Assembly (NCBI GenBank): GCA_965112735.1
Contig: OZ218956.1
Location: 1,054,001 to 1,118,000, forward strand
Direction of reading: 5' to 3'
DNA length: 64,000 nucleotides
Source: Phaeosaccion multiseriatum
Lineage: Eukaryota; Protista; Ochrophyta, other classes
Shown in pieces: positions 1 to 52,921 of the stretch (positions are counted from its first letter, which is position 1; each line of letters opens with the position of its first letter). The notes under the pieces were generated by a model. That model searched no databases. It saw only the letters and a list, made by a program, of their open reading frames with translations, and had not been told where the DNA came from. The translations under genes were made by a program, and so were the position numbers.

Positions 1-2720
1 CTATAACTACGGCTTAGTTAGTCATCACGCGTTCGCAGGAATCGTGACGCTCGACCGTAGGCGGCTGCTCGAGCTATCTCGGAGATCCCTCAGCGTATGT
101 CTGGATATCTTGGACCACATCGTGCTCGCCCCTGCTGGCGTAGCAGCAGTAGGAGGAGGCAAGGGTCCTGACCGGCCCTTCAGGTCCTCTGCGCCGGAGT
201 CTGCAGTCACTCTTTATGAGGATTGCCGGAGCACTTTGGCGGATACTTACCTCCTCCTACGGGGCATGCCGTACACACTCCTCGCCAAGGAAGACGAAGT
301 ACTCGAGGAGTATTACTACCAGCAAGCTCCGATTCCATACGGAGATGAGGGTTCATTAGCCACAGAAAGCGAGAATGCCTGCTTGCTGGAACGGGCCCTC
401 CTTCACGCTCGCTTTCGGCGGCACGACGTTGCCATCCAGATGCTACTCCCCCACTGCGACGCCAATCCAGGTGGCTATGCCCCCCGGGAGTGTAGAGGTA
501 CGCATGTACGCAGCAAAGAGGGAGAGGAGGCTAATGTGGGTGGGGGATGCTGTGAGGAAGATCGGAGTAGCAGGGAAGGGGGGCTCGAGCACGATGGGGA
601 CATTGATGTTCGTCACCAGCTCGACCCCTACTTCGCCACGCCGAGCAAGAGGCAGCCAAAGCGGCAAGAGACGAAAGGTAGCGTCGGAGAGTGCTTCTGC
701 AGGGCTATCGAGGTCATCCAGAAGCATGCTTCAGTAAGTGTGAGCCTTTCACATGTACACCGGCTCTTGGATGCGGTCATGCCCCTAGGCCAGGCGGGCT
801 ACCACTTTTCTCCCACCCCTGTCGCTGCTGTCCATGGCGAATCTCTTGCTCACCAAGAGGGTTCGGGGCCAACAGCGAGGCGGGAGGCCTTGAGGGAAGC
901 AGCGGAGCAAGGCGATGATTCCGTGCCAGCAACGGTGGGGATCTTCCTCCTGCTGGGCCAGGAGAGGATGGAGCTGGCCGCCGCTCACCCGCTGCTTTGC
1001 CGTTCGCTGCTTCATCTCTGGCGCTCACCTGAGCATCGAGCTACTGTGGCGAGGTGCCGCCTGCACGTAATTGGCTCGATCAGGTCAGTGATGTCAATGG
1101 GAGACAAGGACAGGTAGACGCTTTCGTGACTTTCCTCTCACCATCTTTCTCTATGGTTCCCTCGGGCCTGGCCTCAGCCCCGCTTACCCGCAGCAGGAGG
1201 AGAGCTTCCGCCGGGCACTGGGGGAGGCCGCCGACCACCTGTGGGGCGGTTACCACCTCGTAAGAGGGGCGGACTTGCCCCAATACGCTTGGGACGGAAA
1301 CTATCTGCGGTACGTGCGTGTGTTGGTTGGTCGTATCGTGCTTGCGGTGCCTGCAAAGTAAAGTGCTTGTGTCTCTTCCCATTCAGTGCGAGTCTGAGGT
1401 CCGCCCTTTCCCGTCAACTGAAGCCCTCTGATGTAGAATCATACGCTTTTTACTGACCACGTCGTCTTACCCGCTACACCTTCTCTTGTTCTCCTCACTC
1501 GTGCGCTGCAAGCCCTTCTTACCTCCCTCGTCCCTTCTCTCCTGGAACATCGTAGGAAAGTTTACTCCTTCTATTGGCTAAGCGCTTCTCTGGGGTACAC
1601 TCATGTCATGAGTGTCGACGACGACATAATCATCTCGCCGTACGCGCTCGCTTCCCTCGTGAGCAATGCGGACAAGCTAACTTACACCCCTCATCCCCCG
1701 GGCGGAGAGGAGTCGAAAGACAGGGCCCGCGAGGAGGAAGGACAGGCAGAGGCAGGAGAGATGATGGCGACGGCGGAAGCATCCAACTACCGCCACCGCT
1801 CGGCCAAGGGCACAGAAGGAGCAGAAGCGCGAGCATGTAGTATCCTCTCTCCCGCACTCTCTACGGGCATACCCTCCACGGAGATGTGGATCGACGCGCA
1901 CCTGCTGTCGGACAGTAGCGGGAGAGAGGATGCTGTCGATGCAGAGGCCATTCTGAAGTGTTTCGCGCAGTCGACGGTTCCCGAAGGAGACTTGCAGACA
2001 TTTCTTGGCTCGTCCTATCTACCAATGGAGCAGGGCTGGAATTCCTCCGCGCACTACGCGCAGGTGCAGGCTGCAATCGACGCAGGGCATCTGCTGCAAC
2101 CGACCCATACGCACTCCTACGGTGCAGGGCTACACCCAGTGAGGTGGAACAGGACCTGCTCGGAGCAGCTGGCACGAGTGGTTGAGCGGCTGCTCCCCAA
2201 AGAGCTGCTCGTGGACCGTAGTCACGAGGTACGCGTGAGCCAAGTGACCGGTGGGTAGGAAAGGGGTGTGTGGATTGACGTTGAGAAACAAGATCGCCCG
2301 CCCTCCTCCTTACGGTATGCCTCCCTCGTCGGCTGTACGCTCTTTCCCCCCCTCCCCTCCCCACTCCCCCTACACGCGAAGGTGGTCCATGAGCCAACGG
2401 GGAAGTTCCCCTACTTGTGTAACTCCATTTGGGTTGCGCCACTGTCGCTCGTATACCAAACCCTCACTCGCTTCGAGTGGATGAGGTGGTCGCACCCTTT
2501 TGACGAGGCGGTTATGAACAAAATCGTCCACGAAGAGCAGCTGGACTTGTGCTTCGTGCGAAACGCCTTTGCTGTACATCCCACATACCTGCATGACCAG
2601 CGGGACAGAGAGCTTGTTTTCAGCATGCACATCGCCGCCGACAAAATCTTATCGGAAGGGCTGTCTCCGCGGGAGAGCGAGAAAGAGGGGGAGGGAATTG
2701 GAAGATTGGGGATGGACTAG
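1..2720 (+). CDS. Putative GT-A-fold (DxD) glycosyltransferase with TPR-like N-terminus, paralog A; 5' end lies outside the window; at least 4 exons
   Basis: Frame is open from base 2 (YNYG...). Exons approx 2-1083/1112, ~1194-1309 (LWGGYHLV...DGNYLR), 1556-2228 (HVMSVDDDIII, LSPALSTGIP, GLHPVRWN) and 2382-2720 (FPYLCNSIW, HPFDE, FAVHPTY). Collinear with the paralog at 4272-8023. Confidence 0.7.
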
Positions 2721-4271
2721 GGTGAAGGTTGTAAAGACAGGTGTAAAAGAAGATTCCGTTGGCGGGATAAACAACGGGGAAGACGGGAAGCGACACGGGC
2801 GCCAAGCGGGGCGACATTCAATAGAGGAAGAGTGTGGGAGAAGCAACGACAGGACATTCTGCCCTGCCCACTAAGCCCCCCTCGGTTCCTCCCTTGCTCG
2901 CTCGCACGCCCGCAGGCGCTAACGCACGCACGCACGCACCTGCACGGCTCTTCCCGCCCAGCGCAATCCCCGCCGCAGCGCCGCCCTCTCCCTCTCTGCG
3001 TCGCGATACGAAGCCTGACGAAGACTGCTCCAACTGGAATGACTTCGTCGTATTGGAGCCCCACGCGGAGTCTCCGACGGTTGTAAGGAGTGTGGATCAA
3101 GGGCCCTGACCGATTCTTCAGCACAACCAACGCACCCCTGCCACCAGTCACGCCTTCTCTGAATCGGCTTGGTGAGCCTTGGGCCCGGGAAAGGCTGTTC
3201 CTTCATCGGCACGGGGTCTGAAACTGCAGAGATTCGACTGCTGTTGGCCGTACTGCTGCTCCTCCTTTAAAGCGTGAGGGAGGCTCGTCGATCGAGCTGA
3301 AGGAATAGAACGGACAATGAATAAATAAACACCCTTCCCTTTGGAGGGCGAAGCTTCAGTTTGTGTAAAGTGCTTGCTCCGCGAAGCAGAAACAAACTCC
3401 GTATCTCTATGTCGAGCAATAGCTAGTTGCGTGTGCAAGACTGGTGGCATCTGGCTGACCAACTGACCTAAGGACGTAGCTATGAAGCTGTTGGAGTGGT
3501 GGACAAGGACTTTGATTATCGATTAGCAAAGCACGTCTACGGAAGGGCTGATGAGGACTAAGACTCGGTCAATGAGCAGCTGCTCTGAGATCTGGGCTGA
3601 AGAAAGTCAGCTCAGTCAGAGTAAGCTCAGTTGGCCACCAAGAACTTGTCCATCCCCGCACTGGAAAAGACGACGTACGTGTGTAGCTGAGCTTCACGTG
3701 TGCGTTTCATACACGCACTTCCACACCATGTGTGTTTCGCAATCATACATACCGCTAAGACATTTGTCAGCATCGCTCTTGCCTGTGCAGCTAAAGCTCC
3801 ACGTGTGTGTTTCGTAAGCATCACACACCACTCACTGTACACTCACTGAGGCGAAGGCAAGGAGGAGCTGCATCTCGGCCAGCTGTGGTCGGCCTCTCAG
3901 TTCTCTCCAGGGTTGCTGCTGGTCGCCAGCCAAGTGGGAACACCGCCCGTTTCAACATAGGCCTGACAAGTACGCCTGCCAGGGGGAGAGCGGCAGCCAC
4001 GCCTACGCAAGAAAAACAGTCAGGCCTCCCGGTGGCTGTACTTGCTTCGAGAGCCTACTTGGTCCCAGCCATCTGGCTCTGATCTGTGTGAACTCTCTCC
4101 TGCCGAGTGCCACGGATATGGCTGGTGCGTGCTCTTTGCGTCCCTCTGGTGGGTGAAGTGGCGCACCCGTGATCAAGCTTTCCATTCGCATGGCTTCCAT
4201 GAGGTTCGGAAGAGCCGTCTTCCCGTGCCGTTTAGATAGCAAGCGCTTGATGCAGAACAGCAGCCAACAAG

Positions 4272-7200
4272 CTACCCTGCAGAAAACGCCGTAGCGTAAC
4301 AGCGAGAGAGACACTCAACAGAGGCATGTCGATAGTCGCTGCCCTGGGAGTGCCGCTCCAGCTGCTCATCTCCCAAGCTCCACATCTCAAAGTGGGTGTG
4401 AGCACCTATCGAAGCGCTTGCTTTGCCACCCTCACCACCTGCAGCAGCCACAGAAACCGCGGGCCCCCCTATCCAATGCTCAAGTGTCCGCTCCCACGCC
4501 ATGTTCCCAGGGGGAGGGTAGTCGAAGAGGTCAAGCCTCTTTTGCGGGGTTCCGAGCTGCGCCAAATAGTCTGCTCTTGCCCACCAAACGTTTCCTGAGT
4601 AGAACCAGGAGTCTTGCGGCCCGGCCATGAGATCCACCCCACACGTCACAGTCTGTGAGCCTTGTTCTTCGCCATCACCGGGCAGCAGTCTCTCAAGGCA
4701 AAGGCGGTGGTGGTCCAATGTAAAGTAGCTGAGGTAGTCTCTCCATTGTGCCGACCCGAGGTGCTCGGGTCCCCCTCTACCCTTGTTGGCGTTGAGGTAG
4801 AGAATAGAATGATTCCCGTGTCCTCTGGCGAAGTGCCAAACACGCATGAGCACGGGAAGCTCTTGCAACAACAGCATGTGTGGAAAGCACTCGACCTCAA
4901 TGTCAAGACTCTCCGCAGAGCTGCGAAAGGCGTTTTGATGCGAAATCACCTCTTGACACTCGGTAGAGCCCTCCGCTGTTACCACAAGAAAGACTTGCAG
5001 GTTCTTCACCGTCTCGGGAAGGCCTGAGGCAGTTATGCGACTCAGAAGCTCGCTGAGAATGCCCTCCCAACCAGCCAACGCCCTCAGGTGCAAAAACACG
5101 GCGACTTCGGCCGCAGATACAGCGGCAGCAGCAGCAGCAGCAGTCCGAGGAACGTGCTCACAAACCTTCTGTTCCTCTCCTTCTGATGAAGGGCTGCAAC
5201 ACGCCGCCCTCTTGACGACTCGTCTTGGGGGAGAAGCCTTGCCTTTGTCGCCTACCTCAGCCCCAAGAGACTCCGCCTGAGCCTGGGCCAGAGACGTGTC
5301 CCTAGAGAGAGGCACAGTGAAAATCTCTTCCCCCAAATCCTCCTCCTCTGCACCTCCTTCGCTTGCTTCAGTCGCGGCCTTGAGCACTGTATCTGCCTCT
5401 CTGTACAGCTCGAGATGATCTACCCAGCCTTGGTCGTCATGAAAGTATGAGGGGTGCACTGCAAAGGAGTTCTGCACATAGCAAGTGGTCAGTTGCTCTT
5501 CTTTCACGAGCATCGTCATGGGCGCTTCGTCGTACGGATGACTCCTGGAGAGGGAGGGGTCGAGAGAGGAAGCGAGCGAGGAAAAGGGCTGTGAGAACTA
5601 TCCCGGCGAGGCGGTGCCAGGAAACCAAGCTCAACGTCATGTCGTGAAGGGGAGGGGACTTCCGAGCCAGACAAGGTATCCCGTTTTTAAAAAAAAGTCC
5701 GTATCGTAACCATAAAACGTTCTCACCGCACAACTCATCACACAACTCATACCGCCCCTCACTCTCACCATGTGTACCAGTCCGCCCGAGAGAGGACCTC
5801 GAAGACAAACTCCACAGAGGCCATCCACATGCTGTTACAAAAGTAGGGGAACTCGTCCCAGGCTGCAGCATAGAGGCGGTGCTCCTGCTCGGTACGCTCC
5901 TTCCTTGTCACGTTGCGGTGCCTCTCAGTCTCCTTGTGCTGCTGCTGCTCTTCCTTCGTCTCGAAATCTGCCCATTTCCCTCCCGTTCCACCCCTCCTCA
6001 GGAGCTCCGTCTCCATAAGTCGACGGGCCGCATCTCCCATCAAAGTCGAGCACTCCCTGTTGAAGCGCACAGGATGTATGCCCCCAGCGAACGCTCGCAC
6101 GTTGCCTGGCTCAAGGATGTGAGGCAAAGCCCTCTTGACCCGACCGTAAAATGCCTTTGAGTCAAAGTCTCTCCATGGAAAATCGCCGACCCCGATCTCG
6201 ACGTTAGCTTCATTGGGCAGGTCAAACTCAAACTCAGCCTGCGCTTCGTCCGGTTGCTGTCCAAGCCTCAGGGCGGCCAAAACATCCTCCGGTAGCACAG
6301 TTCTGGCGAAGCAGTCTCGCACGCCTACTGCCTCGTCCTCAGAGAGGAAGCTTTCGATGAACATGTCCACTGTGGGAATCCCAGTCGAGAGCGCTGGGGC
6401 GAGGTAGGCACACCTCAATGGGTGCGCTCCTCCTCCACCCTCCCATCCCTCGCTCCTTCCGGCACCATCGCCATTCTTTGGGTGCCTTTTTGGTCGCTCA
6501 TAGCTCACAGACGCTTGTTGCTCGATCATGAACGCAAGCGCTTCGGGAGAGATGATGATATCATCATCGACGCTCATTATGTGAGAGTAACCCCTCTTGA
6601 GACTCACATCGAAGGCTGTAAAGATCTTGCGGAGATAGTTTCCATCCATGGGTTGGGACGGCACCTCCTGCCCTGCCACAAGGTGCAACCCTCCCCACAG
6701 CGCGTGCCCTACTTCCGCCAGCCCCTCCAAAAACTTGTGCTCATCGCCCTCCCAGGTGCTAAGGACGTGTAAGCGGACGCGCTCCACCACAGGGCGATAC
6801 TGCGGTGATCGGTAGAGCAGGAGGAGCGCCCGACAGAGAACGGGGTGAGTCTGAACTAAGTTGAGTCGCTCCACACCCATCAGGAGAAATATGCCAATCT
6901 CTGGCGCCTTGTCGCCGACCTCGCCCACCTCCCTCTCTTCCTTCACCCCAATAGTAGGCCTAGCCTCCCCCTCGACAGAATCACACTTCTCGCGAAGGTA
7001 CTGCTGACTCCTGCTGCTCCTGCTATTGATCGGGGTGCTCTCCCTTTGCTGGACATTGCCGTTCTTCCCTTCCGGAGCGTGCCCTTTGCTGTCCAACGGG
7101 TCGACTAACGCAATCGCTGCATCATACACGTCGTCGCTTACAAGCGTCAGAAGCGCTGACGAATGCCTCTCCACAAGCTCCTGAACGCCATTTAAGGCTT

Positions 7201-8023
7201 CGCTTTCTTCGTCACTGCTCTCTCTGTCTCCCAATACTCCCAGCACGGTCCGCGCATCTTCAGTCTGTCGGTACCGCTCGAAGAGTAAGGCAAGCTGCAA
7301 GGGCACCTCAATAGACTCTTGCGGCAGGAAGTGTGCCGGCAAGGGGTGACACCAATCTTGTCCCGCCTTCTCGACGAAAGGGTGGGGCGCTCGAGAAGTG
7401 GCGCTCGTCAAGAGCACTAGTCCGGTCGCGCAGTTGGCATACAGTTGTCGCATCTTCTCGCCCACGGACTCATCGCCGGGGCTACCCTGCTCTGCCCCTG
7501 CTCTGTCGTCGCCGTCTCCAGACATGGGCTGCAGCAGGGGTGGTAGGAGGTGTATACAAGTCCAAAAGGACCTCCTTGCGGCCGCAATGAGTGCGAATTG
7601 GTCATACGCACCACTATAAATGTCAGGGTAGGATCTGAGGCAGGCAGCGCCGTAGTTATAGAAAGCCGTTCCTAGCAGTAGAACGTCCCCCTCCTTCATC
7701 GACGGCAATGACCCCGCCACCTCCACAGCTTCAGACACCATCACTCCAAAAAAGCGCAGAGCACAATCGTACTTTCCTTCGGAGAGGCATGAGCCAGCGG
7801 CCTCAAAATCTCGATGCTTAACGATCCGCCGATGTTCCTCGTACGAATCCACATCGTTCACCAGCGAGCTTCGTAGGGCACTGGCGCCGGCACTTCCCAG
7901 AAAAGGCGCGTCTTCCAGAGCACCAGAAGGGCGGGAAAGCCTCGCCGCGCGGGCAGACCTACCAAGATACAGGAGCAGACAAGCCATCGCCGCCACCTTC
8001 GTTCTCTCCCGATGCCGCTTCAT
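4272..8023 (-). CDS. Secreted multidomain protein: TPR-like region, DxD GT-A-like domain (paralog B) and a C-terminal YL..KG/SGNxWW domain of unknown function
   Basis: Hydrophobic N-terminus (AAMACLLLYLG). Exon 8023-~5770 has SVDDDIII, LSTGIPT, GIHPVRF and PYFCNSMW. Exon 5544-4272 continues WSHPYDE...FAVHPSY, then ELPVLMRVWHF, YLNANKG, WRDYLSYF, FYSGNVWWARADYL and EHWIG. Confidence 0.75.
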
Positions 8024-8289: not shown

Positions 8290-10041
8290 ATGAGGTTGCA
8301 TTTTCAAGCTGGTGTGCTGCTACTGCTCACCGTCCTTTTGCATGGCGAGAGAGCTCGTGGCGGCGAAGTCATTCCAGCAGACGGCTCTGCCTCTGGACAG
8401 GAGTACACCCTCCTGCATGATCTCGCCACCCAGTTCAACACTGACAAGGTGCAGGGGGAGAAGGGGTTCAGTGAGTCCTTGCTTGATGGGCCTTAGCTAC
8501 CCCTTACTTTTTCGGTGTGTGTCAACCTGCCTCAGGCTGCCCATGGCTTTGCTCCCTTGTACGAGGAGCGGTTTGGTCATCTTCGCCACACTCCGGCAGC
8601 CCTCCTTGAGGTGAGTGCGAGTCACTCTGCAGCCACCAGGCCTGCCCATCCTTTCCTGATGAGGCCGAAGCTGACGCAGCGGGCAGCGTGGGGCCTTTTT
8701 CGAAGCCCGATCTCGCTGAATGTCTCTTCTCCCCCCCCCCCCCACCTACCCACTACTGCTTCGCTCCTCCTGGCATGTCTTGCTTATGGCGGTTTGTCTG
8801 ATATCGGTTCATGGGCTCTTGCTTGTTGCTTGTTGCCCGAAGGTGGGGGTGTGGCAAGGCGCGTCGCTGAGCATGTGGCACGCCTTCCTCGATCACGCAG
8901 AGGCTCGGGTTGTTGGTATCGACCACTTCAAGGGGGGGCGTTTCAATCCGGCAGTGTGAGTTGTGCTCAAGCGCGGGGGAAGGAGGGGGAGCGATCCGAT
9001 AGAGCAAGAGAATTGCATCTCGGAGGAGCTGTGTTCATATGTCGTTCCTTATCTGTCGTCATCCCTTCAGGCACATCGAAGATGAAGGTAGGCGCTTTGT
9101 GTCCGTCGAGAGTCAACGCTCGTCACCCGCTGATCCTGCCCGAGTACTGCGGGCATACCAATACGGAGAATTACCACATGGTAAGGACTGAGAGGCTCAC
9201 TCACATTCACACTCACAGAGTTTTCCCCGCTGACCTTCTAACCCCCCTCTTCCCTACCTTGTAATACTCTTACTCTTTTCCACAGGTCAAGAAGTCTATA
9301 TGGTGGACCAGAGCGATAGGAAAGAGCTCGCTCGCTTCGTCTCTCTTCTCCAAAGGTCAGTGAAACACCCACGCCGCCTCAGTCTCCCTTCTTTGCTTAA
9401 CCGCTGTCCCCCCCGGCTCCGACAGGACAAACTCCGCCTTCGATGTCATTATCGACGACGGCAGCCATGTCATGAAGGACCAACAGCAAACGATGGGGAT
9501 GCTGTTTCCCTTCATCAGGCCCGGGGGCATTTTTGTGATGGAAGACACGACAACCTCGCGGCCCCCATGGACAGGTGGAACGGCAGCTCCCCCCTCTAGC
9601 CTCTTCTGCCTGAGCGTACCCCAGGACTAGATGCTTGACGCTGGCAGCGCTTACGCAGTAGAGCTGATGCTCCGAATGAATTCTCCCCCCGCGTCATGTC
9701 CTTCAGGCTATGGCGTGTTGCCAGACTCGTCCAATAACTGGTGGGCCCTGGTGAAGACGTGGCAGAGCACGGGAAAGGTGGAGTCGATGTACATGACACC
9801 AGAGGAGATGGCGTACATGACTCAGTGGACCGACAGCATGGTGAGTGACCACCGGTAGGCGGAACATACTCGCTCGCACTCGCTGACGTACGCTAACACC
9901 AACGCTGTTGATCTGTCACCTTCCCTTGGTCACCAGGAGTGCTTCATTCTCGTGGAGGGCAAGTCCGAGACGTGTCTCGTGCACAAAAAGGCCACCGTTG
10001 GAGGGCCAACCAGCAACAACCTCGAACAACTGGAAAGATAG
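8290..10041 (+). CDS. Secreted MycE/OleY-type SAM-dependent sugar O-methyltransferase, copy 1 (~8 exons)
   Basis: Signal peptide MRLHFQAGVLLLLTVLLHG. Spliced motifs TDK|AAHGFAPLYEERF, LLE|VGVWQGASLSMW, VVGID, DQSD, FDVIIDDGSH, IRPGGIFVMEDT. Last exon ECFILVEGKSETC ends at TAG 10039-10041. Confidence 0.85.
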
Positions 10042-12963: not shown

Positions 12964-13525
12964 CTGCTACAGTTAGAGGGGGAGACCATGGTATTAGATA
13001 GTTGTAACAGCAATTTTATGGGGGGTAGAAGAGAGAGGGAGAGCGATACAAGAGGGATACACAAAGATAGAGAAAATGGAGAGCAGAGAGAGCGACGTGG
13101 TAACGCGCCAATAGAATAAATATAACCTTGGCCCGTGGGAGTGTAAGACGATTGGGGGGGGGCGGGCGGCGCAGAGGTGCAGGTGCAGGTGCAGGCTGCC
13201 TTTGCGCGTGACTTTTGGCAGGTCTTGGCCACGCCTGCGGCGGTCCTATCCGAGGCGGACCGGGAAGAAAAGCTTCCCATACTGAGGGCAAGTTATCTCC
13301 CGTACAAATAAGATGAAAGAGTGAAAAGTGAAAAGAAAAAGAAAGAACAGAGTTGAGTGCCATCTGTGCGTGTTGGTGCTCCAAAACCTCGAGACCGGTG
13401 AGCTTTACTTTATAAAAAAAAAAAATTAAAAGAAAGCCCAGCAACACGACAAAACCACCACCCAAAATGATTTAGGCTTGCTTTGCAGAAGAGGCCGAAG
13501 AAGGAGAGGGAATCTTCTGAGAACC

Positions 13526-15969: not shown

Positions 15970-16378
15970 TCACTTCATCCTTGATCTTAAAAGAAGCTCC
16001 GCACCATCCTTCGACGTTGATAACCCATGAGCTGAGGCAGCGACATAGACTCCCACTCCCACCCTTCCGTCTTGCATGAGCGAGCTGTGCGTCACACCAG
16101 GGCCCCCGAGGATCGCCTGCACTTCCAGCGGGGGAGAGGCAAGCACCAAGCCGAGTCCCAAAACGTCTTCCCACGCGCGCTTAACGTCAAAGTACAAGTC
16201 GTCCACCACGAGGACGTGCCAGTCTCTGTGTGAGACAAACAAGACCCCAAAACACAGGTGCACCGATTCATCGGGGGGGAGGAGGGCCTTTCGTGTAAGC
16301 GGACGGTTCGCAAAGACAAAAGGCTGACCCAAAAGCAGGACGCTGAGTGGGTCAGAGAGGTTGGCAAAACCCGTGCTT

Positions 16379-16416
<38 letters not shown>

Positions 16417-41800: not shown

Positions 41801-44800
41801 TCACTTGCGCTGAGGCACCTTGCCATCTCTCTCCCTCTCTGTACCACTCTACAACATCGCCCCCTCACCTGAGATGACAGCGATTCGTATGGGGCGATCC
41901 CTAGTCAGGTGGAAGGGCGCCACCTGCTGCCGCGACCACTCACGGGAGGCAGCAGGGACGACATCGATAATGACAGAGGCCTCTGCAAGCTGAAGGACTC
42001 CTGCGTCTTTCCGTCCCGTCCCAGGGGCCACAGGGGGAGTCTCCATCATAACGCGGATGGTGAGCACGTGCGTGCCTGCTCTGATACCGTCCGCGATGAA
42101 AGGAGAAAACGGGATGACGCTGCAGTCCGGCGGCCGCGCTGAGGCAGAGGACTCAATCACGATGCAGGCGTACACTGATGGAACTTCCCCCTGCCCCCCC
42201 CGTCCCACCCCCGCCACTGCTGCTGCTGCTGCTGCTGCTGCTGCAAGTACGTCATCGGTGCCGTCTACATGAAAGTCAACGACAACCTCCGCCACATGCT
42301 CCGACTCCTTCTCCACAATGACCGCCCCTGACGCAGGGGTGGTGATGGTGATGACAGGAAGGGCCTTGACATGAAGCAGCCACTTCGGCGGTTCTTGCTC
42401 AGCATTGTGGGCCAAAGGACGTACTCTGTCACTCTTCGTCTCAGCCGAGCCAGTCACTCTTCTTCCCTGCACTGCCGGCAAGAGGCAAAGCATTCGCTGC
42501 CGCTCACTCCAGTCCGCCACTGGAAGGCTCTCACACCCGTCGTTGCGTTGGGGCCCTTCCGACCCTCCCCCTCTGAGTTCTCCATTGGTTCCACCTTCTC
42601 GGCGGACTTGCAAGTGCCAATGCCGTAGGGAAGGTGGAAGCGCGTAAAGCGGCTGCGTCACTGCTTCCTTAAACGCCTCCGGTTTGGTGGGGTGCAAGTC
42701 GGAGAGGCTGTGGTCCAAGTCCCAGCGCAACCACTTGTCCTCCAGCCAGCGACGCCCTACGTCGTCAGCGTGGGCAAAGGACTCGACCTGCATGGGTTGG
42801 AGAGAGTGATCGTTGAGATGGCGCCATCGTCTACGAAAACAAACCCGTGAGTACGCCACAATGGCGGCAAAGACATTCTCATAGAGCACCGGACGAGGCC
42901 TCAATGAGCAGCAGCAGCAGCAGGAGCATCAGAGCGGCGCACACGCACACGCACCTTCTTGCGAAGCTCCGTCGTTGTGCGGACGTAGCTCAGGTGATGG
43001 CAGATGGCAACTGATGGGTCGATTTCTGCCCCTTCCTGCTGCTCCACGGGTATCCCGGGGCTGACGGTGCAGCTCAATTCACGAGCTCGTATCCACTTAC
43101 AGCGGTAAGGGTCTACAAGCCACAAAATACGGAGGGTTTCCGGGGGTTGTATGGCGATTCGGAAAGACTGTCGGGCATTTCGGGACATGGGGGAAGGAAA
43201 GGGGTACCGAAATTGGCTGAAAGGAGTGAGGGGACGGCACACAACATGGTGGGGAGGACGATCCACCGGGTTCGTTCCGTCTCTCCCTGGCACTCATTTA
43301 ACGCTCCTTACCTTCCAGTATGTGGCCATGGTAGCCTGGAAGAAGGGCACATGCGGGTTCCACGCGGCGAGCACCAGGCCTTTGACGAGGTCAACGGGGT
43401 GCCAGAATTCGTCTGTATCAAGAACAAGAACGCGCAAGCTGCCCCCTTCTCCTTCAGCACCACCCGGCCCCCACCGCGCCTTGGCTTGCTCGTTTCCGTG
43501 TTGTCGCTGCGCCTCTTCAGAGGGCCAGTCGCCGACCTCGAACACCAGTTTGTCGGCAAGCAATCGTCTGCTCCTCCAAGACCCGCCAGTGCGGCGCTTG
43601 CTGCTGTCCGCTAACCCTTCATCAGGAGCGTCGAAGCGTTGCAAGCTCTCGAGAAGACGAATGGTCCCCGAGTTGTCCCTCGCCTGCCCCTTCCACGGCA
43701 TGGCGCTGACCAGGACGAGGACGTGGTCCACAACGAGGGCGACCTCCTCAAGGGTGGCTAGGAGGAGCGCACAGTCATCATACACCAGCATCACGGCCGC
43801 AACCTGCAGCCGATCGTCTCCGCCCAGCCAAGCTGCCACCGGCGGGCTCATAACAGCGCCCATCCAGCCGGAGTGAAACGCATAGTCTTCCTGCAGCTGT
43901 GCTACCGCCGGCTGAGAAGCCCCATATCCTCCGGACGCCGCCTCCTCTGCTTCGAGGCCCAAGTTGAGAAAGAGCAGGTCCGAGTCCAACTGGATAAGCG
44001 CCTTAAGCTGGGCAACATTCAAGCCTCCACCCCACCGATCGAGCCAGAGCATGGGGTAAGAGTCCTGTTCCTGTGCCCTTTCGTCATCGCAGGTCTCTTG
44101 CTCACTTCTGCCCTGCTGCGTCCTTTCCACTCCTTCAGTCTCCTCCTTTCCCGACCCCTCCGGATGCAAGTGGCTGCTGTACTCACCCACATGAAAATGG
44201 TACGGATGGTGCTCAGAAAAGAAGGCTTCCCGGTCTAAAGGGCTGAGGCCTCGGTGACTCTGGAAACCCATGTGGCGGATCCAATCGGCAATCCCCGCTT
44301 GGAAGAGATACCTGTCGTTCAGAGGCCCCAAGGAGGAAAAGGCGGCACCGTCGAAGACGAGAGCAGGGAAAGGCAGAAGCCCCCCGAGGCTCTCCGTGAA
44401 GTAGGGAGCGGGGGGCACCGCGCTTGCTTTCCCCCCCTCCTCTCTTTGCTGGTCTGGCAACTGTGGTACAGCACTGAGAAGCAGAGCACTTCCTCCTTCG
44501 CTTCCGTACTCCAAGCGCTGGGCCTCGTAGGCTTCGAAAATGTCTCTGCTGATGCGGACAAGTCCTGCCTTCGATCCGCCCGCCGCTTCCGGCTTCGCGT
44601 CTAACAGCGGCCCTCGACGTCCGGCTGGCCTCAGCAGAGGCGTGGAAGTAGTAACAACCACGAGTATTGCCCCAGGAGACACGACCGAGGCTGCCCTGTT
44701 CAGAGCACTAGGGTAGCCTTCAAACTCTGGCAGTTCAAGAAAAGTCAGAGAGGGCCAAAGTTCCGTCGAGCCTGCGGAGGATGACGCAAAAGAAGAGCAG

Positions 44801-45374
44801 GAAAGCAGGAGGTCCCAAGCCTCCTTCCTCTCTGCTTGAGACAGTGCATACCCATTGAGGACGACAAGGACGTTAAGCCCAGGGCTTGCGGCATGTCGCA
44901 CAGACGCCTCCAGGGTTTGCGAGAGCGGGGTCAGACGGAAGTCGTGGTATCGAACATCGTTTGCGATACTCAGCACCACGACCCATCTCTCCGCCTGAAA
45001 CGATCCACCTATCCATGCGCAAAAAGGGCGAAGGGGGTGAGTTGGGCGAAACGGAATGGGCAAAGCGAAGTCGGAGAGAAAGAGAAAGGGGGAGGAGAAG
45101 GGAGGTTTGTACCTTCGTCCCGGAGCCCCCTTTCCTCCTCAAAAGAAACGTCTTCTCCAGTCCCCTCAGCTAGAGGGTGCCTTCGCCCATGGGAGTGCTT
45201 GTACCACACCGGAGCGAGGTCCACATCTTGGCGCAGGTTACCCTCCGGCGAACCATCAGCAGTACAAGACGTGCAAGCGCCAGGCTGCAGGAACCACAAC
45301 GAATGCCCTAAGAGAGCAGTCAAGACCGTTCTGAGCAGGGCAGCCCACGGGTAGGAGGGAAGAGGCCTGGCCAT
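38867..45374 (-). CDS. Giant secreted multi-glycosyltransferase: degenerate GT2-like, GT-A (DTDE), Ig-like, GT4 and GT10 (alpha-1,3/4-fucosyltransferase-like) domains
   Basis: One signal peptide at 45374 and ~6 exons. GT2-like: GYPSALNRA, LGPLNDRY. GT-A: VLVLDTDEFW, HHLSYVR. GT4: MLGRVDSTKGP, SETYGIGNVEAL. GT10: AYLYSRC, YRFVVAFENS, GYWTEKIVNAF, VPVYWG. GT4 and GT10 share one uninterrupted 717-aa ORF. Confidence 0.75.
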
Positions 45375-45644: not shown

Positions 45645-48600
45645 ATGAGGAGAGCTTCCTCACCGGCAACAGCAGCAGCCCTTTCAGGAAGCAGAAGATT
45701 CCTGGTCACTCGAGTGAGCGCTGGGGGTCCGCAGCTTTCAAGAAAGAGGAGGAGGAACGGCGCGGTGCCCAGTCCCTGTGGCACTGCCTGCTCCGGAATT
45801 GATGCGTGGAGGAGCAGAGTCGGAGCGTGTGGGAGGGGTCTGCTGTCCCTGGGTCAGCGTGACTATCACCAGCAGCATGCTGCTCGGACTCAGACGGGGG
45901 GGAGGGGGGGGCGGCGTGAGGCTCAGGCGCAAGACCAGGACTCATGGCGCGAGAGGTGGAGCAGGGTCATGCGGACGAAGCAGGGCAAAGCGAGGCAGCA
46001 GGAATTGGTCAAGGAGATCGGATTGCTAGGCCGCAAAGGTAGGCTGCAGGATCTTCGCTGCTTGGTGGAGCAGGCTGAATCAGAAATCTGGGTTGGGGCG
46101 AGTGTGGAGAAGGGGAGAGGTGGGTTCGAGAGAGGAAGGCTCTCTGGCCCTGAATGGAATGCTTACGTGTACAACGCCATTATCTCTGCATATGGGCGTT
46201 GCGGACAGTGGCGTGAGGCTGTGGCCGTTCTCACCAAGATGACAGGCTCTGGAGTCACGCCGGACATTGTAAGTGAGACGCGGACGAGGGAGGGGGGGGA
46301 GGCAGGGCTTTGTGGGTCGCAGTAGAGCGCATCCGACGTTCAGGTAGGGGGAGTCTTACCAAGGCCTCGCCCTCTTAATCGAGTCCTTTCAGATCTCTTA
46401 CAACTCGGCCATCGCTGCCTGCGCCAAGGCCGGTCAACATGTCTTGAGCCTGTCGCTCATGAAGAGGGCCGAGCGAGGCGGCCTCGTTCCAGACGTGTTC
46501 ACCTACAACGCTTGCATAAATGCGTGTGCCAGGTACGGACGGAGTCTCCTGTATTGTTGTTTCTCTTTCTTGTTTGTATGGTACACCACTGCATGCCCAT
46601 GGGTGCCCGCTGACGTACAAACACACGTCCTTCCTTCCTTGCGAAAGGTACGGGCAGCAGGCGCAGGCGGAGTCCGTCTTCCGCGCGATGCAGCAGCAAG
46701 GAGTCGCTCCCGACGCCATTACCTTCAGCTCTCTTATGAAGGTGCACAACCGCGCCATGGACTTTGACGCAACGCTTTCCCTGCTTCGCTCTATGAATGC
46801 CGAGGAAGCAGAGCCGACGGGGGGAAGGGAAAGGGGGGACCAGGGCAGCAATGCCGGAGCGAAAGCAGACGCCCACTGCTACAGCGCAGCAATGGATGCC
46901 TGCGCTGGGCTGGGGGACCCAGAGAGAGCCGAGGTAGGTGCCTTTGCTCCTTCCCCCGATCGCGGGCACTGCTTACCTCCGTTGCGTTCGGATTGGATCT
47001 CTGATCCAGTTGTGAGTCCGTCCAGAGAGAGGTGCACGGAATCTTTTGCCCTGGTCATGTGATGTTTAGTCTGTTTGTGGGTATTAAGCCTCTTTTGACC
47101 TGGGCCCGCCTGATCTCAGCCGCTCTCCCCCCAACGTATGCTGCGAGACAAGGCCCTGCTCGACGAGATGCGCCGCGTCGGATTGGAGCCCACGGTGCAG
47201 TGCTACAACATCGCTATGAAGGCCTTCGCTGACGAGGGGAATACAGGCAGGACAGTACAGGTGACAGTCGAGAGGCACTACTCACGAGGAATGAGATGAA
47301 TCGTGGAGGTCGATTACGCGCATTCGGGCAGGATAGGAAAACAACTCTCACTCTCACACACACACTTCAATGCGTGCCTCCGCCCCGTGCTCCTATGTCG
47401 GTGTCCCGCGCAGCTGCTGCACGACATGTTGGACGCAGACACAGCGGTGCGGCCCGACGTTGTGAGCTACAACACCGCACTGCTGGCGCACTCGGTGGCC
47501 GTTCGGATGGAGATGTCTGCATCGTCGTGGTCGGGGTCGTTGGGGGAGACGAGGCAAAGCGTTGAAGTGGGGGGTGGCGAGGACGCGGAAGGCGCCCAAC
47601 GCGTGCAGAGGAGAGACGGCTGCGCTCGGCTAGTGGGGTGGATGGTCGCGATGCTTCAGAGCATGGAGAAGGGCGGTACAGGTAAGAGCAAAGCGCCTGC
47701 AGCAGGGTGTGGTTCAGCAGCAGCGGCTCTCGTCCTCTGTACTCAGCTTGTGTATCCTTTCCTCCCCCCCCGTCTGTTCTGGATTTCCGACACGAGAGAA
47801 GGGCGTGTGCGACCTAATGCGGTATCCTATGGAACCACAATGTCTGCCTGCGCGCGCGCGGGTGACGCTGTGTCTGCCCTGCAGCTACTGGACGTCATTG
47901 CTCGACATCCTGAGGTGGACGTGGATGAAAAGATGTATTGTGCGGTCATCTCCGCCTGTGCCAAGGTGAGGAGAAGTGAAAAGATGCGGGGGATGGGCCG
48001 GAACTCTCGGCTTTGTGCAGAGTCTGAAGGAGAAGTCCCTTAGGTCGAAGAATAGACGGACAGGCGGACGACAGTACACTCGAACTTGTGGAGCTGCATG
48101 AAGGCGGGATGCACGCTCAAACTGTCTCTCCCCCCCCCTCCCCGCCCGTGATGCTCTGGCAACCCTCTTCCCCTCCGACATCCTTTCTGTGGCCGCGAGA
48201 GTGCAGGCAGGGCGCTTGACATCGGCCCTGGATTTGCTGCAAGAAATGCGCGAAGGGGGGAGGCCTCCAGTCCGCTCCCAACACGTGGGAAGACAACAAG
48301 GGCAGAGAACAGCGCAAGGGAAGCATGGCAAGCCACTGAGGCCCAATGCACACTGCTATGCTGCTGCGATTTCGGGCTGTGCCGCGACTGGCGACCTCGA
48401 GCAAGCCCTCACACTGCTTCAAAGGTGCGATGCTGAGCTCATTTTTGACACACCGGGGAGGAGGGGGGTGAGGAGTGGGGGATTATACCTGCTAAGCTGA
48501 CCATCCCCTTTTCTGCGTACAGGATGCAAGACGACGGCTTACAAGCAGACACAGCGTGCTACAACGCTGCCATCACTGTGTGCAGGGTCGGGCGGCAGTG

Positions 48601-49575
48601 GGAGGAGGCTTTGCGACTCTTTGGCAGACTGGAGGGAAGCGGTGAGTCTTTGCCTTACACTTACCCCTTCTTCTTGGCTGTTGGCAGGCTCTCCACCCTC
48701 CCGTCTGCGTCGGAACTGCCTCCACTCGGGTGTGCTTTGGCCACTTTACTTCCTTGTCTTCTCACGGCGACACTTTTCCCTTTCCCTTACCCCATGCTCT
48801 CCCCCCTCACAGCCTTTGCGCGGCCCACCTGGGAAACTTTCCGCCAGTTGCTGGAGGTGCTGGACGCTGCTGAGAAAAGCGAGCTCGCAGACTCTCTGTA
48901 CCTCGAACTTGTTGCCCTGGGCTATGCAGAGCACCAGCAGGAGGGGGGCCATTCAGCAGCGCTGCGTCGGGAGGGCGACGAGCAGGCTTTCTCGCCCATG
49001 GTTCTTTCTGCCGGTAAAGGCATGAAGGGGGGGATTGGCCGCACAGCACAAGACGATTCCTGCCTCTCGCTGAGGGGCCACACGGTGTCCATGTCCAAGG
49101 TGAGCTTGTGATACAATACCTCACATTTGGCGACATCAGACGCGTTCACGGCCGTCACATATGATCCAAAGGTGGCGCGGCAGTGCGCATGTCTCAATCC
49201 ACTTCCACTGCATCATGTTGTGTCTGTGTGCAGGCCGCCCTTCGGCACGCTCTGAGGGGCTTGGAGCAGAGGTGGAGAGGAGAGTCAGGGGGTGAAGGTG
49301 AAGGTGAAGGTCGCATAGGCGACCTGGTGATCATGACCGGCGGAACATGGAGAAAGGGCGAAGGAAAGCTAGGCCCGGCGATCGCCGAATATGCCTTGCA
49401 GGAGTATGGCTTGGCATCTAAATGGATATTGGAGGAGGACGAAGAGGGTTTGAGTGCCCCCGATATGGAAAGCGATTGTGGGGAACATACGGCAAGCAGG
49501 GGGCAAGAGTTTCGGGCGTTGGTCATCCGAGAGCAGTGCTTGCAGGGGCTGTTCGAAAGGCGAAGACAGGTGTAG
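45645..49575 (+). CDS. Pentatricopeptide repeat (PPR) protein with a C-terminal SMR-like domain
   Basis: Repeats YNAIISAYGRCGQW, YNSAIAACAK, PDVFTYNACINAC, PDAITFSSLM, YSAAMDAC, PNAVSYGTTMSAC, YNAAITVC. C-terminal LSLRGHTVSMSKAALRHAL...LVIMTG. Arg/Ser-rich transit-peptide-like start. Confidence 0.9.
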
Positions 49576-49714: not shown

Positions 49715-52700
49715 TCAGCCCTCAGCACAGGGTCGGCGCCCAATCTCCACATGACGGTAGAAGCTCTCGAGCCTGTCCTTCGCCCGTGCGTAGCCCCTCA
49801 TGGCGTCGCTCTGCGCTGCTCGGCCGAGTCTCTCGCTCAGGTCGCCTCCCTCCAGCAGACTCTCCAGGGCGTTGGCCAGGGCCAGCGGGGTGGGGAGCGG
49901 GACCAACAGGCCATTCTCTCTGTGCCGGATAAGCTCTGCTGCTCCTCCGAAGCCGAAGGTAACGACGGGAAGGCCTTGGGACATGGCCTCTGGTCCCACC
50001 TGCAGGCAGTCGAGAAAGGACGGAGGGAGAGGGAGGGGATTAAATAAGCGTCAGTGATGGCGACTTGGAAATCAAGGCCAGGCAGGGTAGAGAAGAATAG
50101 AGACACGCGCTCTGAGACAGAGCACACTCACCATTCCAAAGGTTTCGCAGCCGAGGGACGGAAAGACCAAAGCCAAGACGTCGGATGTGAGTATGGCGTG
50201 GTGCACTCGGTCTGAGGGGACATAGCCCCCGAAGGTCACGTTGGCTTGCATCTGCAGCGCGAGACGTCGCATCTGCGGCAAGATTGATCCGCTGCCAATG
50301 AGGACACCATGGGCAGACGGATGGTCCTCGTTCAGTATGGCCATCGCCCTGACGAACATTCCTGGGCCTTTCTCCCCTGACAAGCGTCCAAAAAAGACAA
50401 AGTGGGTCCAAGGCGGTATGACCCACCGCTCAGCCCTGTCCCTCGGGGCATCGCCAGAGACTTCACTGCGGTGCCCCCTCCTTCCACCTCCTCTAAGCGC
50501 CATGAGAGGGGGGAGGATAAACACTGGCCTCTTGAAGTTGCCGACGAGCTTCACGTAGCTGGAAGGGGAAACCAACGCCGTGAACGCCTCGATGGAGGCA
50601 GTCGTGCCGCCGCTGTTGCCCCCATCCGACGCTGGGGGCCGGGCTCCTACGTCAAGAATTCGCGCGTCGACCCCAGCGAGTCTAGCCACCTGCACAAGGT
50701 ATGCGTCGTTTCCCCCTGGGGCAGTCACTCCAGGGCCGTTGGCCATGACAAGAATATCAAAGCTCGACAGCACGTCATACAGACCTTGCAGGCCCTGTCG
50801 CAAGGTGTCGTCCACGCCGCTGACAACGTCCCACGAAGGAGACGTGTGAAGCACACTGTGTACGTAAGCATGCACTCCAAGCCCTCGCGAGGAGGCATGC
50901 TCCGCGACTACGGAGTCCAGCTCGGTGCAGTACTTCACCACATGAAGACTTGGAGCTTTGACCCCTTCAAAGAGCTTCAACTTCTCTCGCACCATTCTCT
51001 CCAGGGGTCTCAGATGCTCTGCCGCACTCCGCGCTTCCTCCTCCTCCTCTTGCCTGCAATATCCACCATCCAACGCAGAGCCCTCTGGGGCACAGGCACC
51101 ATCAGAGACTATACCAGGACCGACAGCGCTGCTGACGTCTCTCCTGTCACCGGACTCGTCGGTATCGACACGGGACTCATCCTTCCAGCACGACAGGTCC
51201 AAAAGGGTCACTTCAAAGCTACCTGTCCCTGCCAAAAGCACAGCCTGGTTTAAGAAGTTCACCTTTACCCCATCCACAGAGCCCAGATCAAATATATACA
51301 CGATGCTCCTCAGAGATGGAGGCCCTTCCAGGGTGCAGTGCTCGATATCGGAGTCCGAGATGGGCTCTTCCACCAGCGCCTCGAGTGTGCTGAGAGCGGC
51401 AGTTTGGGACGGAGAGCGAGAGAGTACGATACTTTCGTCGGGGGTATACACCTCCAGCGATACGTACATGGAGGGCACATCGTCGCAGCACACAAGCTCT
51501 CCGCTCTCTGCGTCCTCCCGGGCCTCTGAGGTGAGCCCACAAAGGAAGCATGCCTCCACACTGAGAGAGCCATAGACGCCCTTGGTGCTGATGGCCGCTC
51601 CCACGCGGAAAGCCTCTGACACGCTGAGCACCTGTGGGTACGCATTGTTCAGCGTAACTCGAATCAAAGAAGAGGGCATGGTGGGCACGGGTGCTTGGCT
51701 CTCGTGCATGGCACATAGACTGATGCGCATTGCATCATTTCTGCCGTTGATGATGGCGCCATCCTGGTTGCCGGGCTGGGCCGTGGGCGCTTCCCCCTGG
51801 TGGCCATCCCTGCCCCCTTCTACTCCATCAGCCCCCCCCCCCCTCGCGGGGTCCCAATGCAGCAACCGTGGCGAGAGTAAAGGAAGTTCGAGGCGCGTAG
51901 TGCCTCCCGCTGCGGTGCAGGTCACTTCCAGTGAAGTGAGACGTATGCGCTGCCACACTGATGGGCCTTCCCCCTGCCCGTGGGCAGAAATAACTTTGGT
52001 GAAGCCCTCGAAGCCCTCCAAAGCATCGACCTCCGCACTGCGATTTTCAAAGCTCACGAGATACACACCCGTCATCCCGTAGGGCCTCTCGAAGTCGTGC
52101 AGAGGGCGTACCACCACCATCCAGCAGGGGCGAGCAGTGTGTCTCCACAGCACGCGTAGTGCCCTCGCCGCACCACATCCTCCTTCATCAGCAGCAAGCG
52201 CACACCTATCTTCAGTCTCGGTATCGTCCCAGTCGCTGGCCGAGTGCAGGATGTAGCTTCCCACGCATTTGGTCAACGGAGGAGTGAGCGAGGGCGAAGG
52301 GTGCAGAGCCACAGACTCGCAGGGAGGACACCGCACCGAAACTTGGCGGTGGACACGCAGAAATCCCTGAGGCTCGTGGGGTTCGCTCCCCTCTGCCAGT
52401 TCCCAATGAATCAACCAGCCCCAGCTCCTCCTTGGCGGCTGTGTGGCGCCATCCTCTGTGGAAGCCCCTCTCCAATCCCACCCTGCCTCATTCTTCCGCG
52501 TCTCGTGCTCGTATGGAGAGACCGGCACGTAAGCTAAGACGTGTTCTTCATCGTTGCGCCCCCCTCCTGTATCGGGTCTGGGCAATGTGATGACCCAGGC
52601 ATCTGTCCCCGTGGAGAGAAGTGCGCGGTGGAGCTGCAAAACAGACCGATCGCCAACATCCGCCCCCACCCACCTTCCCTCGGAAGACATTGCGTACCCC

Positions 52701-52921
52701 CCAGAGAGGAAGTCTCCCAACCCCTCCACCTGCACTATACCGCAGGGAAGGTCCGGAGAAGGGCGGCCTGGGAACGACTCCCACGCCCGAGCTGCGGCAC
52801 CCGAGGTGAGCGGCACCTCCAGGTAACCCACCGACGGAGGAGCAGCTTGTGCCTGTGTGGCGAGAAGACCCAGCAGGACGAGGGATGCGCGGACTCCCAT
52901 CCTGAAGTAGGGCACAGCCAT
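49715..52921 (-). CDS. Secreted GT4-family (GT-B) glycosyltransferase with a large N-terminal region
   Basis: Signal peptide ASLVLLGLLATQAQA. Motifs FFGRLSGEKGPG, FPSLGCETFGM|VGPEAMSQGLPVV, ELIRHRENGLLV. One intron at ~50000-50130. Confidence 0.88.

Follow-up and report, generated by a model that had tools for sequence, protein, structure and literature searches.

A dense cluster of candidate glycosyltransferase and sugar methyltransferase genes in the alga Phaeosaccion multiseriatum

Introduction

Natively O-methylated sugars are widespread in the walls, scales, mucilages and N-glycans of algae, and to our knowledge the methyltransferases (MTs) behind them are essentially unassigned in eukaryotes. 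Among the sugar MTs that have been described, MycE, TylE and MycF methylate macrolide sugars, with MycE acting before MycF on mycinose, and NovP acts on the noviose of novobiocin. Co-location of non-homologous enzymes for one extracellular glycan is exemplified by the five-gene, co-regulated galactosaminogalactan set of Aspergillus fumigatus, which includes no MTs. In algae of the Mamiellales, the outlier chromosomes have an atypical guanine-plus-cytosine (GC) content. One of these, chromosome 19 of Ostreococcus tauri (the ‘viral immunity chromosome’), is enriched in glycosyltransferase (GT) and MT genes, RgpF-like GTs and an FkbM MT among them, which are thought to remodel surface glycans (PMC5082852). 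In the chlorovirus PBCV-1, two MTs methylate rhamnose sequentially, A064R-D3 at 2-O and then A061L at 3-O (PMC9614988). Here we describe a 64,000-nucleotide stretch of the ochrophyte Phaeosaccion multiseriatum (assembly GCA_965112735.1, contig OZ218956.1, positions 1,054,001 to 1,118,000 of the forward strand), hereafter the window, in which positions 1-52921 hold a dense cluster of GT and MT genes.

On balance, we lean towards reading this interval as a true algal gene cluster, nuclear and intron-bearing, the enzymes of which would jointly build and cap one lineage-specific fucose/6-deoxyhexose glycan carrying several O-methyl groups. New here are the occurrence of the cluster families beside MycE-type MTs in unrelated contigs of viral, metagenomic and bacterial origin, and the fusion of a DUF8361-like domain to such an MT in two viral open reading frames (ORFs).

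Results

Thirteen candidate glycosyltransferase and methyltransferase genes in 53 kb

Genes were modeled with a splice-aware predictor that combined codon log-odds with donor and acceptor scores, the codon model having replaced an overfitted hexamer coding model. Remote profile searches took single exons instead of spliced proteins, so that multi-exon genes were judged exon by exon and all scores were weakened. Within positions 1-52921, 16-17 genes were modeled, nearly all of them with introns; the introns all have GT-AG ends, and the two junctions that were read showed ordinary introns of 90-230 nt. Thirteen of the genes (~75%) are GT or sugar-type MT look-alikes from ~9 sequence-unrelated families, comprising about seven candidate sugar O-methyltransferases and six glycosyltransferases. 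A first-pass annotation of this DNA had counted 13 such genes among 16, and the independent splice-aware models bear out that count. We class seven of the 13 as firm (g3, g4, g5b, g7, g13, g15 and g17), four as moderate (g1, g2, g8/9 and g12) and two as weak (g6 and g10). The remaining genes of the interval are a DUF2358 gene (g5a), an ankyrin-like gene (g14), a pentatricopeptide repeat (PPR) gene (g16) and one doubtful ORF (g11). The cluster spans at least 53 kb and probably runs on upstream of the window, the start of which cuts g1 itself.

Two checks speak for the splicing. Genes g3 and g4 lie on opposite strands and were predicted independently; six of their internal exons agree exactly in length (75, 113, 110, 70, 149 and 134 nt). 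Profile positions, in turn, run collinear across the predicted introns of g5b (PF05711, positions 51-100, 100-189 and 198-244), g17 (GT4, 18-109 and 111-171) and, with a gap between the two matches, g13 (DUF579, 2-79 and 131-177). Introns cut through TylF, GT4, DUF579 and MycE-type domains. Because of the identical exon lengths and the collinear profile positions, we regard these as spliced eukaryotic genes and not as contamination. Bacterial contamination was also rejected in view of the introns, the PPR gene and a 254-kb DNA contig.

By a crude hydropathy test, hydrophobic N-termini resembling signal peptides or anchors occur in 9-10 of the 13 proteins (g2, g3, g4, g5b, g7, g10, g13, g15 and g17, and weakly g12), in line with the earlier claim that most of them carry such a segment. 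The genes lie on both strands, with no operon arrangement, and mostly form head-to-head pairs with short shared upstream DNA: 266 bp between g2 and g3, 157 bp between g4 and g5a, and likewise between g6 and g7, g9 and g10, g13 and g14, and g15 and g16.

Candidate sugar methyltransferases

The MT genes are listed below; loci from other genomes and contigs to which they and the GT genes are compared carry L numbers.

g3: 8290..10041, + strand; MycE/TylE-type sugar O-methyltransferase; 8 exons, signal-like N-terminus, Methyltransf_24 matches on two collinear exons
g4: 10057..11762, - strand; second MycE/TylE-type methyltransferase; duplicate of g3 in inverted, tail-to-tail orientation
g5b: 13526..15574, + strand; TylF/MycF-type metal-dependent sugar O-methyltransferase (PF05711); 7 exons, signal-like N-terminus
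g6: 15970..17992, - strand; Methyltransf_24-like class I methyltransferase, a weak call (PF13578, E 0.002) from an imprecise gene model
g8/9: 22060..25223, - strand; N-terminal region without assigned function plus FkbM-like methyltransferase, merged into a single 518-aa model
g10: 25595..28428, + strand; signal-bearing gene with three weak collinear matches to g6, the S-adenosylmethionine (SAM) motif I region included; a weak call
g13: 35498..36876, - strand; DUF579 (IRX15/GXM) methyltransferase (PF21729, E 1.4e-19; second exon, E 4.9e-6), signal-like N-terminus

A profile of the 49-aa exon common to g3 and g4 matched only MycE (3ssm, 3.5e-11) and TylE (8ia9, 1.3e-9) among 177,635 PDB sequences, and a DDGSH...ED block is conserved between g3/g4 and the MycE alignment. 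The two genes form an inverted duplication (8290-11762) with 15 bp between their stop codons. As their six internal exon lengths are identical, the duplication must be later than intron gain, and the genes are therefore long-term residents of this genome.

For g5b, PF05711 scored 76.6, 51.9 and 47.4 bits on three collinear exons (E 8e-14, 2.5e-21 and 1.9e-12) against a cut-off of 23, and the PDB matches were MycF (1e-10) and NovP. The model shows DGD...DD motifs, which we take to be metal-binding. Positions 13164-13940 are represented by short contigs with variant letters in all four genomic DNA runs of the one sample. There, 65 nt are missing at one joint (13391 to 13457) and 195 nt at another (13601 to 13797), in overlap with exon 1 and intron 1 of g5b; the broken assembly there probably reflects allelic or repeat heterogeneity.

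The DUF579 assignment of g13 is firm as well, with 70.8 bits to PF21729 against a curated cut-off of 27.8; a word-based search with the DUF579 exon returned no homolog, the index used being unsuited to so divergent a lineage. The remaining MT calls are less secure. The match of g8/9 to PF05050 lies below the cut-off of 22.7 (14.2 bits, E 0.048), and the same model matches by tblastn (5e-29) an ORF in locus L007 that adjoins a MycE-type MT and itself scores 21.8 bits to FkbM, against the same cut-off of 22.7. The g6 model, which shows the motifs ICEVGFNMG and DMIFVDGGHSYS, is a probable if weak Methyltransf_24-like MT. Gene g10 had no Pfam match and is possibly a divergent paralog of g6; it is probably what the first-pass annotation listed as its second Methyltransf_24-like gene. 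NCBIfam profiles gave no matches on the weak exons.

The only solved relatives of g3/g4 and g5b are MycE, TylE, MycF and NovP, and algal TylF-family genes have been read as polyketide-related (PMC10756674). Perhaps, then, the cluster decorates small-molecule glycosides or glycolipids, such as the sugars of polyketide toxins or lipids, and not a glycan polymer or glycoprotein. We consider this distinctly improbable: no polyketide synthase (PKS), non-ribosomal peptide synthetase (NRPS) or lipid-synthesis gene that could supply an aglycone was found in the window, the DUF579/GXM, GT17, GT10 and RXYLT1-like families work on polysaccharide or glycoprotein glycans, and the enzymes bear signal-like N-termini. 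An IMG/VR contig described below (L044), moreover, couples the same MTs to guanosine diphosphate (GDP)-fucose synthesis and a fucosyltransferase.

Candidate glycosyltransferases

The GT genes are as follows.

g1: 1..2720, + strand; GT-A-like gene cut by the window start; paralog of g2 (tblastn 1.6e-54) without the DUF8361 domain
g2: 4272..8023, - strand (exons 8023-5769 and 5544-4272); 1176-aa protein with a signal-like N-terminus and two GT-A-like domains, one bearing a DxD motif and the other matching DUF8361
g7: 18075..21843, + strand; GT17-family glycosyltransferase with a long N-terminal extension (PF04724, 26.7 bits against a cut-off of 26 on one exon; a weak collinear match on a second)
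g12: 31307..34264, - strand; RXYLT1/exostosin-like (GT-B type) glycosyltransferase (RXYLT1_C, E 0.003, exon 31875-32090), with a conserved motif split by an intron
g15: 38867..45374, - strand; 1909-aa multi-domain glycosyltransferase in 5 exons, with C-terminal GT4 and GT10 (fucosyltransferase) domains (Pfam) after GT-A-like regions
g17: 49715..52921, - strand; 1025-aa protein with a signal-like N-terminus, an 800-aa region without assigned function and a GT4 domain split by an intron

Genes g1 and g2 are convergent paralogs with different intron counts (3 and 1, respectively) and have the DxD stretch SVDDDIIISP in common. The DxD domain of g2 gave a Galactosyl_T match (E 0.018) and a protein atlas score of 0.92 with GT-A families only, and its second domain scored 0.97 to DUF8361 in the same atlas; the structural neighbors of the model for the top atlas match are RgpF, GT17, GT34 and GT31. 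The two g2 exons stand as two separate ORFs in the raw ORF list. An exact sequence look-up of g2 returned no record, no close relative turned up when viral contigs were scanned with the g2 domains and the TylF exon as single-protein queries, and AlphaFold models of the two g2 domains were unusable (predicted local distance difference test scores of 42 and 41). Searches of the PDB by phmmer with single exons of g2, g3, g6, g8, g12 and g15 gave nothing useful.

The GT17 assignment of g7 is reinforced by matches to clear GT17 ORFs in four other loci, L024, L031, L078 and L178 (1e-19 for L178). A (TTG)34 array lies in or beside a g7 exon (19881-19983). For g12 there was no direct match to Exostosin (PF03016); phmmer (6.4e-6) linked it to an ORF of locus L032 that scores 44 bits to RXYLT1_C, above the cut-off, and 27 bits to Exostosin_GT47, below it. 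In g17, exon 1 matches PF00534 over profile positions 18-109 and exon 2 over 111-171.

The GT10 domain of g15 is well supported, with 42.7 bits to PF00852 against a cut-off of 23.9 and the motif FENS...YWTEK (canonical FxxxFENS...Y.TEK). In a full HMMER search, the GT4-GT10 exon of g15 found no close ortholog (best match 4e-53 at 40% identity). The spliced model aligns collinear and at full length with protein P0001 of another eukaryote assembly (L001, GCA_964200425.2; E 2e-123), and picoeukaryote-like marine metagenome contigs (L002-L004) encode homologous GT4 and GT10 proteins, two of which, P0002 and P0004, have GT31 too. The homologs from L001-L004 are 1400-1500 aa long. Given the full-length P0001 and the GT31-GT4-GT10 proteins of picoeukaryotes, multi-GT proteins such as g15 belong to an existing algal or protist family.

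Most of the families named in the first-pass annotation stand: TylF, two MycE-type MTs, DUF579, GT17, GT4/GT10 and GT4. Its two GT-A-like genes and its FkbM gene (FkbM-like, E 0.048) are of moderate strength and its two Methyltransf_24-like genes weak, and the labels ‘GT47-like’ and ‘GT2-like’ could not be established. Its description of the product as methylated and fucosylated fits the gene content (a GT10 domain, the MycE-type and TylF-type set, and DUF579/GXM). The suggestion that the product is also acylated or sulfated found no support, as no sulfotransferase or acyltransferase family was detected by Pfam among the ORFs scanned.

Duplication and chance

An all-versus-all BLAST of the gene models connected only g1 with g2, g3 with g4 and, distantly, two GT4 domains. 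Since only two recent paralog pairs were found, duplication explains little of the grouping; the first-pass annotation had likewise held tandem duplication to be insufficient, and we reject it as the sole cause.

A second mundane explanation is a chance neighborhood, or an artefact of reading too much into weak domain matches. Several calls are indeed weak (g6 and g10) or indirect (g1, g8/9 and g12). We nonetheless judge this explanation highly improbable, as seven genes are firm by themselves. In a binomial test, nine of 17 genes counted as firm or moderate as then classed (11 in the present classing), or 7 independent families in 15 genes once paralog pairs were collapsed; with an assumed GT/MT background of 5%, and correction for 1100 windows, this conservative set gave P ~0.004, and all 13 genes gave P <1e-10. 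Chance co-location is thus very unlikely, and dropping the two weakest family calls (g6 and g10) leaves the conclusion unchanged.

The same families recur beside MycE-type methyltransferases elsewhere

The conserved MycE-type exon was used as a scan query, and the gene models were then searched against all ORFs within 10 kb of the matches, in 240 unrelated loci: 80 viral (of 248 IMG/VR loci), 80 metagenomic and 80 bacterial. MycE-type relatives are abundant in IMG/VR viral contigs (248 loci), metagenomes and bacteria. Among the 80 loci of each set, 10 viral, 5 metagenomic and 4 bacterial ones had further cluster families next to the MycE-type MT, the partners being TylF (6), GT10 (4), GT17 (4) and, once each, FkbM-like, RXYLT1_C-like and nearby DUF8361-like ORFs; Pfam confirmed the partner ORFs. 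The non-GT/MT genes of the window had no partners in these loci.

The FkbM-like ORF of L007 overlaps the end of the MycE-type MT gene, and in L032 the RXYLT1_C/exostosin-like ORF lies along with a GT10 fucosyltransferase beside a MycE-type MT. In two IMG/VR contigs (L074:8894-10249 and L077:8882-10249), a DUF8361-like domain is fused to a MycE-type MT in a single ORF (BLASTP 3e-7), and these fused ORFs have a ...SG..WWA..DY... block in common with g2. In a further IMG/VR contig, of viral or bacterial origin (L044:5400-15400, GC 0.28), genes for GDP-mannose 4,6-dehydratase, a GT10 fucosyltransferase and a MycE-type MT lie along with an epimerase/reductase gene, a TylF gene and an RXYLT1_C-like ORF. 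This compact locus has the look of a methyl-fucose glycan module and resembles a pared-down algal cluster that also supplies its own substrate. Recurrence and the DUF8361-MT fusion, which mirrors the head-to-head pair of g2 and g3, provide independent evidence that the families cooperate on a fucose/deoxyhexose glycan, and support a shared module that may methylate such a glycan. The likeness to bacterial and viral glycan islands noted in the first-pass annotation is borne out in that the same families adjoin MycE-type MTs in IMG/VR, metagenome and bacterial contigs.

This likeness also invites the idea that the interval is a domesticated block, taken in one piece from a giant virus or bacterium and later fitted with introns and signal peptides, its co-location reflecting common descent and not selection. 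Every MT family here, and several of the GT families, are typical of bacteria and viruses, MycE-type relatives are plentiful in IMG/VR, where other cluster families accompany them in more loci than in bacteria (10 against 4 of 80), and the fusion and adjacency patterns in viral contigs mirror g2 and g3. We find such a transfer rather improbable. GC content (0.52-0.61 within the cluster, 0.56-0.60 in the flank) does not step at the interval edges, and the codon-position signature of long ORFs is uniform throughout the window, flanks included. Pfam scans of the window ORFs matched no viral hallmark gene (capsid, PolB, A32 ATPase and others), no bacterial housekeeping gene was found in the window, and host-type PPR and DUF2358 genes stand between the enzymes. 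Homologs in viruses and bacteria share only 27-36% identity over whole domains, and single-protein scans gave no close relative. Eukaryotes have full-length homologs of g15, and the DUF579 family belongs to plants and algae. A recent viral insertion was rejected.

Other genes, repeats and a promoter motif

The genes of the interval that are neither GT nor MT genes are as follows.

g5a: 11920..13311, + strand; host-type DUF2358 gene (PF10184, E 3.5e-7)
g11: 29050..30192, + strand; doubtful ORF with no meaningful Pfam match
g14: 37037..38314, + strand; ankyrin-like protein (weak Ank_2 match, E 0.029)
g16: 45969..49569, + strand; PPR-repeat protein, with weak PPR-family matches (E ~1e-4 on exon 47300-48040, weaker on exon 48449-49108) and an uncertain 3' end

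To the right of the cluster, within 53999-61705, lie a gene resembling sugar transporters of the major facilitator superfamily (54.0-54.9 kb) and a single-exon class I/II aminotransferase gene (60158-61705, E 9.5e-53). Neither is a nucleotide-sugar enzyme, and for this reason we have not counted them as cluster members.

A 9-mer recurs in the interval:

9-mer AGAACCAAC: 11831-11839 (-), 18103-18111 (+), 25523-25531 (+), 45580-45588 (-) and 19826-19834 (-); the copy at 11831 is ~70 nt upstream of the g4 start

Five copies compare with 0.38 expected in the window, and none of 100 shuffles reached five. Four of them read in the sense direction, 70-210 nt upstream of where g4, g7, g10 and g15 are predicted to start, and the 9-mer often lies within a longer (G/T)AGAACCAACAC. 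A promoter k-mer enrichment test was borderline. This candidate could be a shared regulatory or promoter element, or else the organism's general initiator.

At three intergenic sites (34817-34903, 38331-38400 and 62525-62601), a related 31-32-bp unit (CCGCTATCCGCTATCG...GCCGGCGCCAG-like) is repeated in short tandem arrays, and an 82-bp repeat lies at 34592-34754; these may be remnants of miniature transposable elements. Near the end of the window, a (CTCC)n microsatellite of ~82 copies occupies 62622-62947.

Discussion

The features described above suggest a working model for the cluster, in which a single product, the order of the steps and their cellular location are what we infer from the genes. 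The enzymes are most likely lumen-directed, acting in the endoplasmic reticulum (ER) and Golgi, as their hydrophobic N-termini suggest, these being the one basis for a secretory or extracellular reading. The GT-A/DUF8361, GT17-like, RXYLT1/exostosin-like and GT4 enzymes would extend a glycan chain in the secretory pathway, to which the GT10 domain would attach alpha-linked fucose. MycE-type and then TylF-type enzymes may methylate adjacent hydroxyls on a terminal 6-deoxyhexose, for which MycE/MycF on mycinose, and A064R-D3 followed by A061L on rhamnose in chlorovirus PBCV-1, would serve as models of ordered methylation. The DUF579, FkbM-like and Methyltransf_24-like enzymes would methylate other residues. 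Short head-to-head promoters, for example between g2 and g3 or g6 and g7, may aid co-expression.

Several points weigh against this reading. The window yielded no gene for nucleotide-sugar synthesis or transport and none for a flippase or polymerase, the cluster is interspersed with three or four unrelated genes, g6 and g10 are weak family calls, and word-based searches with the g2 exon, whole and GT-A region, detected no homolog of the first domain of g1/g2. The four public runs carrying this DNA, all from one sample, are genomic DNA (flat depth, contigs that cross introns) and give no splicing or expression signal. Co-occurrence in other loci is modest (19 of 240), and the background GT/MT density in the chance test is an assumption, not a measurement. 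In addition, within 10 kb of the P0001 gene, and in the related picoeukaryote contigs, there are only ordinary genes and no GT or MT neighbors. As no cluster family neighbors these homologs of g15, the only eukaryotic ones detectable, the cluster linkage is not conserved at that distance.

The lack of conserved linkage around the g15 homologs sits well with the main alternative, a surface-glycan diversification island in which GT and MT genes of bacterial and viral type build up, undergo duplication and turn over, serving several decorations and perhaps driven by virus pressure. The model for such an island is the small outlier chromosome of the Mamiellales. Chromosome 19 of Ostreococcus and the chromosomes equivalent to it hold 5-14 GT and 0-11 MT genes and are tied to prasinovirus resistance (PMC5082852). 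The local inverted duplications g1/g2 and g3/g4 would fit turnover of this kind, and in feature space the g2 domains have their nearest relatives mostly among viral clusters. There is, however, no GC anomaly relative to the flanks here, whereas outlier chromosomes differ in GC; the genes are intron-rich and intact, with no transposon domains among the ORFs scanned; and the family combinations recur elsewhere as compact modules, which favors cooperation. We therefore regard a diversification island as unlikely, albeit a serious contender, and one that shades into the favored reading of a cluster devoted to one methylated fucose/6-deoxyhexose glycan.

It is tempting to speculate further that the eukaryote assembled its own ‘O-antigen-like’ cluster from families of bacterial and giant-virus type, making a permethylated deoxyhexose/fucose cap. 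The module would then be common to the alga and algal viruses, as part of a glycan arms race in which receptors are masked or mimicked. We put this forward tentatively, as an idea more likely wrong than right.

As the cluster brings together about seven candidate sugar O-methyltransferases and six glycosyltransferases, the question of algal sugar methylation becomes directly testable. The cluster is an unusually dense eukaryotic case of glycan genes organized in the manner of bacteria and giant viruses, a grouping rare in eukaryotes, and it is relevant to the formation of metabolic clusters in eukaryotes as well as to the exchange of genes between algae and their viruses. The recurring module, in which a MycE-type MT has TylF, GT10, GT17, DUF8361 or RXYLT1-like partners and is sometimes fused into one ORF, may also help to annotate glycan loci in viruses and bacteria.

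Comparison with known systems

The closest algal parallel is the Mamiellales outlier chromosome, also a region rich in bacterial- and viral-type GT and MT genes, and the same enrichment is seen here. That case involves a whole chromosome of 100-290 kb, in which GT and MT genes make up ~15-25% of ORFs and are accompanied by sugar transporters, epimerases and transposons (PMC5082852). The cluster described here is, by contrast, compact, ~75% GT/MT, intron-rich and normal in GC, with no nucleotide-sugar genes found and no transposon domains in the scanned ORFs.

Giant-virus glycogene clusters, including A064R and A061L of PBCV-1, likewise place GT-A-like GTs together with class I sugar MTs and contain multi-domain GT proteins (PMC9614988), and in IMG/VR contigs MycE-type MTs adjoin TylF, GT10, GT17, FkbM-like and DUF8361-like ORFs. 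Unlike these, the genes of P. multiseriatum are nuclear and spliced, have signal-like N-termini and are interrupted by host genes, with no capsid or other viral gene found. The marks of an endogenous giant-virus element, hallmark genes and compositional contrast, are lacking in the window.

Bacterial O-antigen, capsule and glycolipid loci also group many unrelated GTs and sugar MTs for one product (for example L044, or the Mycobacterium locus L228 with MycE-type and TylF genes). They differ from the algal cluster, in which genes lie on both strands with their own promoters, and in which Pfam scans of ~90 ORFs detected no Wzx/Wzy, ATP-binding cassette (ABC) exporter, initiating transferase or nucleoside diphosphate (NDP)-sugar synthesis family. 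The MycE/MycF (mycinamicin) and TylE/TylF (tylosin) pairs offer a closer match at the level of single enzymes, as g3/g4 match MycE/TylE and g5b matches MycF, and the two MT types are neighbors as in the macrolide clusters; the differences are a eukaryotic host, spliced genes, signal-like N-termini and no macrolide synthase in the window.

With the plant GXM/IRX15 DUF579 glucuronoxylan methyltransferases, the cluster shares g13, which scores above the curated cut-off of PF21729, although it sits in an alga with no known glucuronoxylan. Compared with the galactosaminogalactan cluster of A. fumigatus, finally, the algal cluster is much larger and includes methyltransferases. The adjacency of several non-homologous enzyme genes that defines a eukaryotic biosynthetic gene cluster is present in P. 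multiseriatum, with 13 genes of ~9 families in 53 kb.

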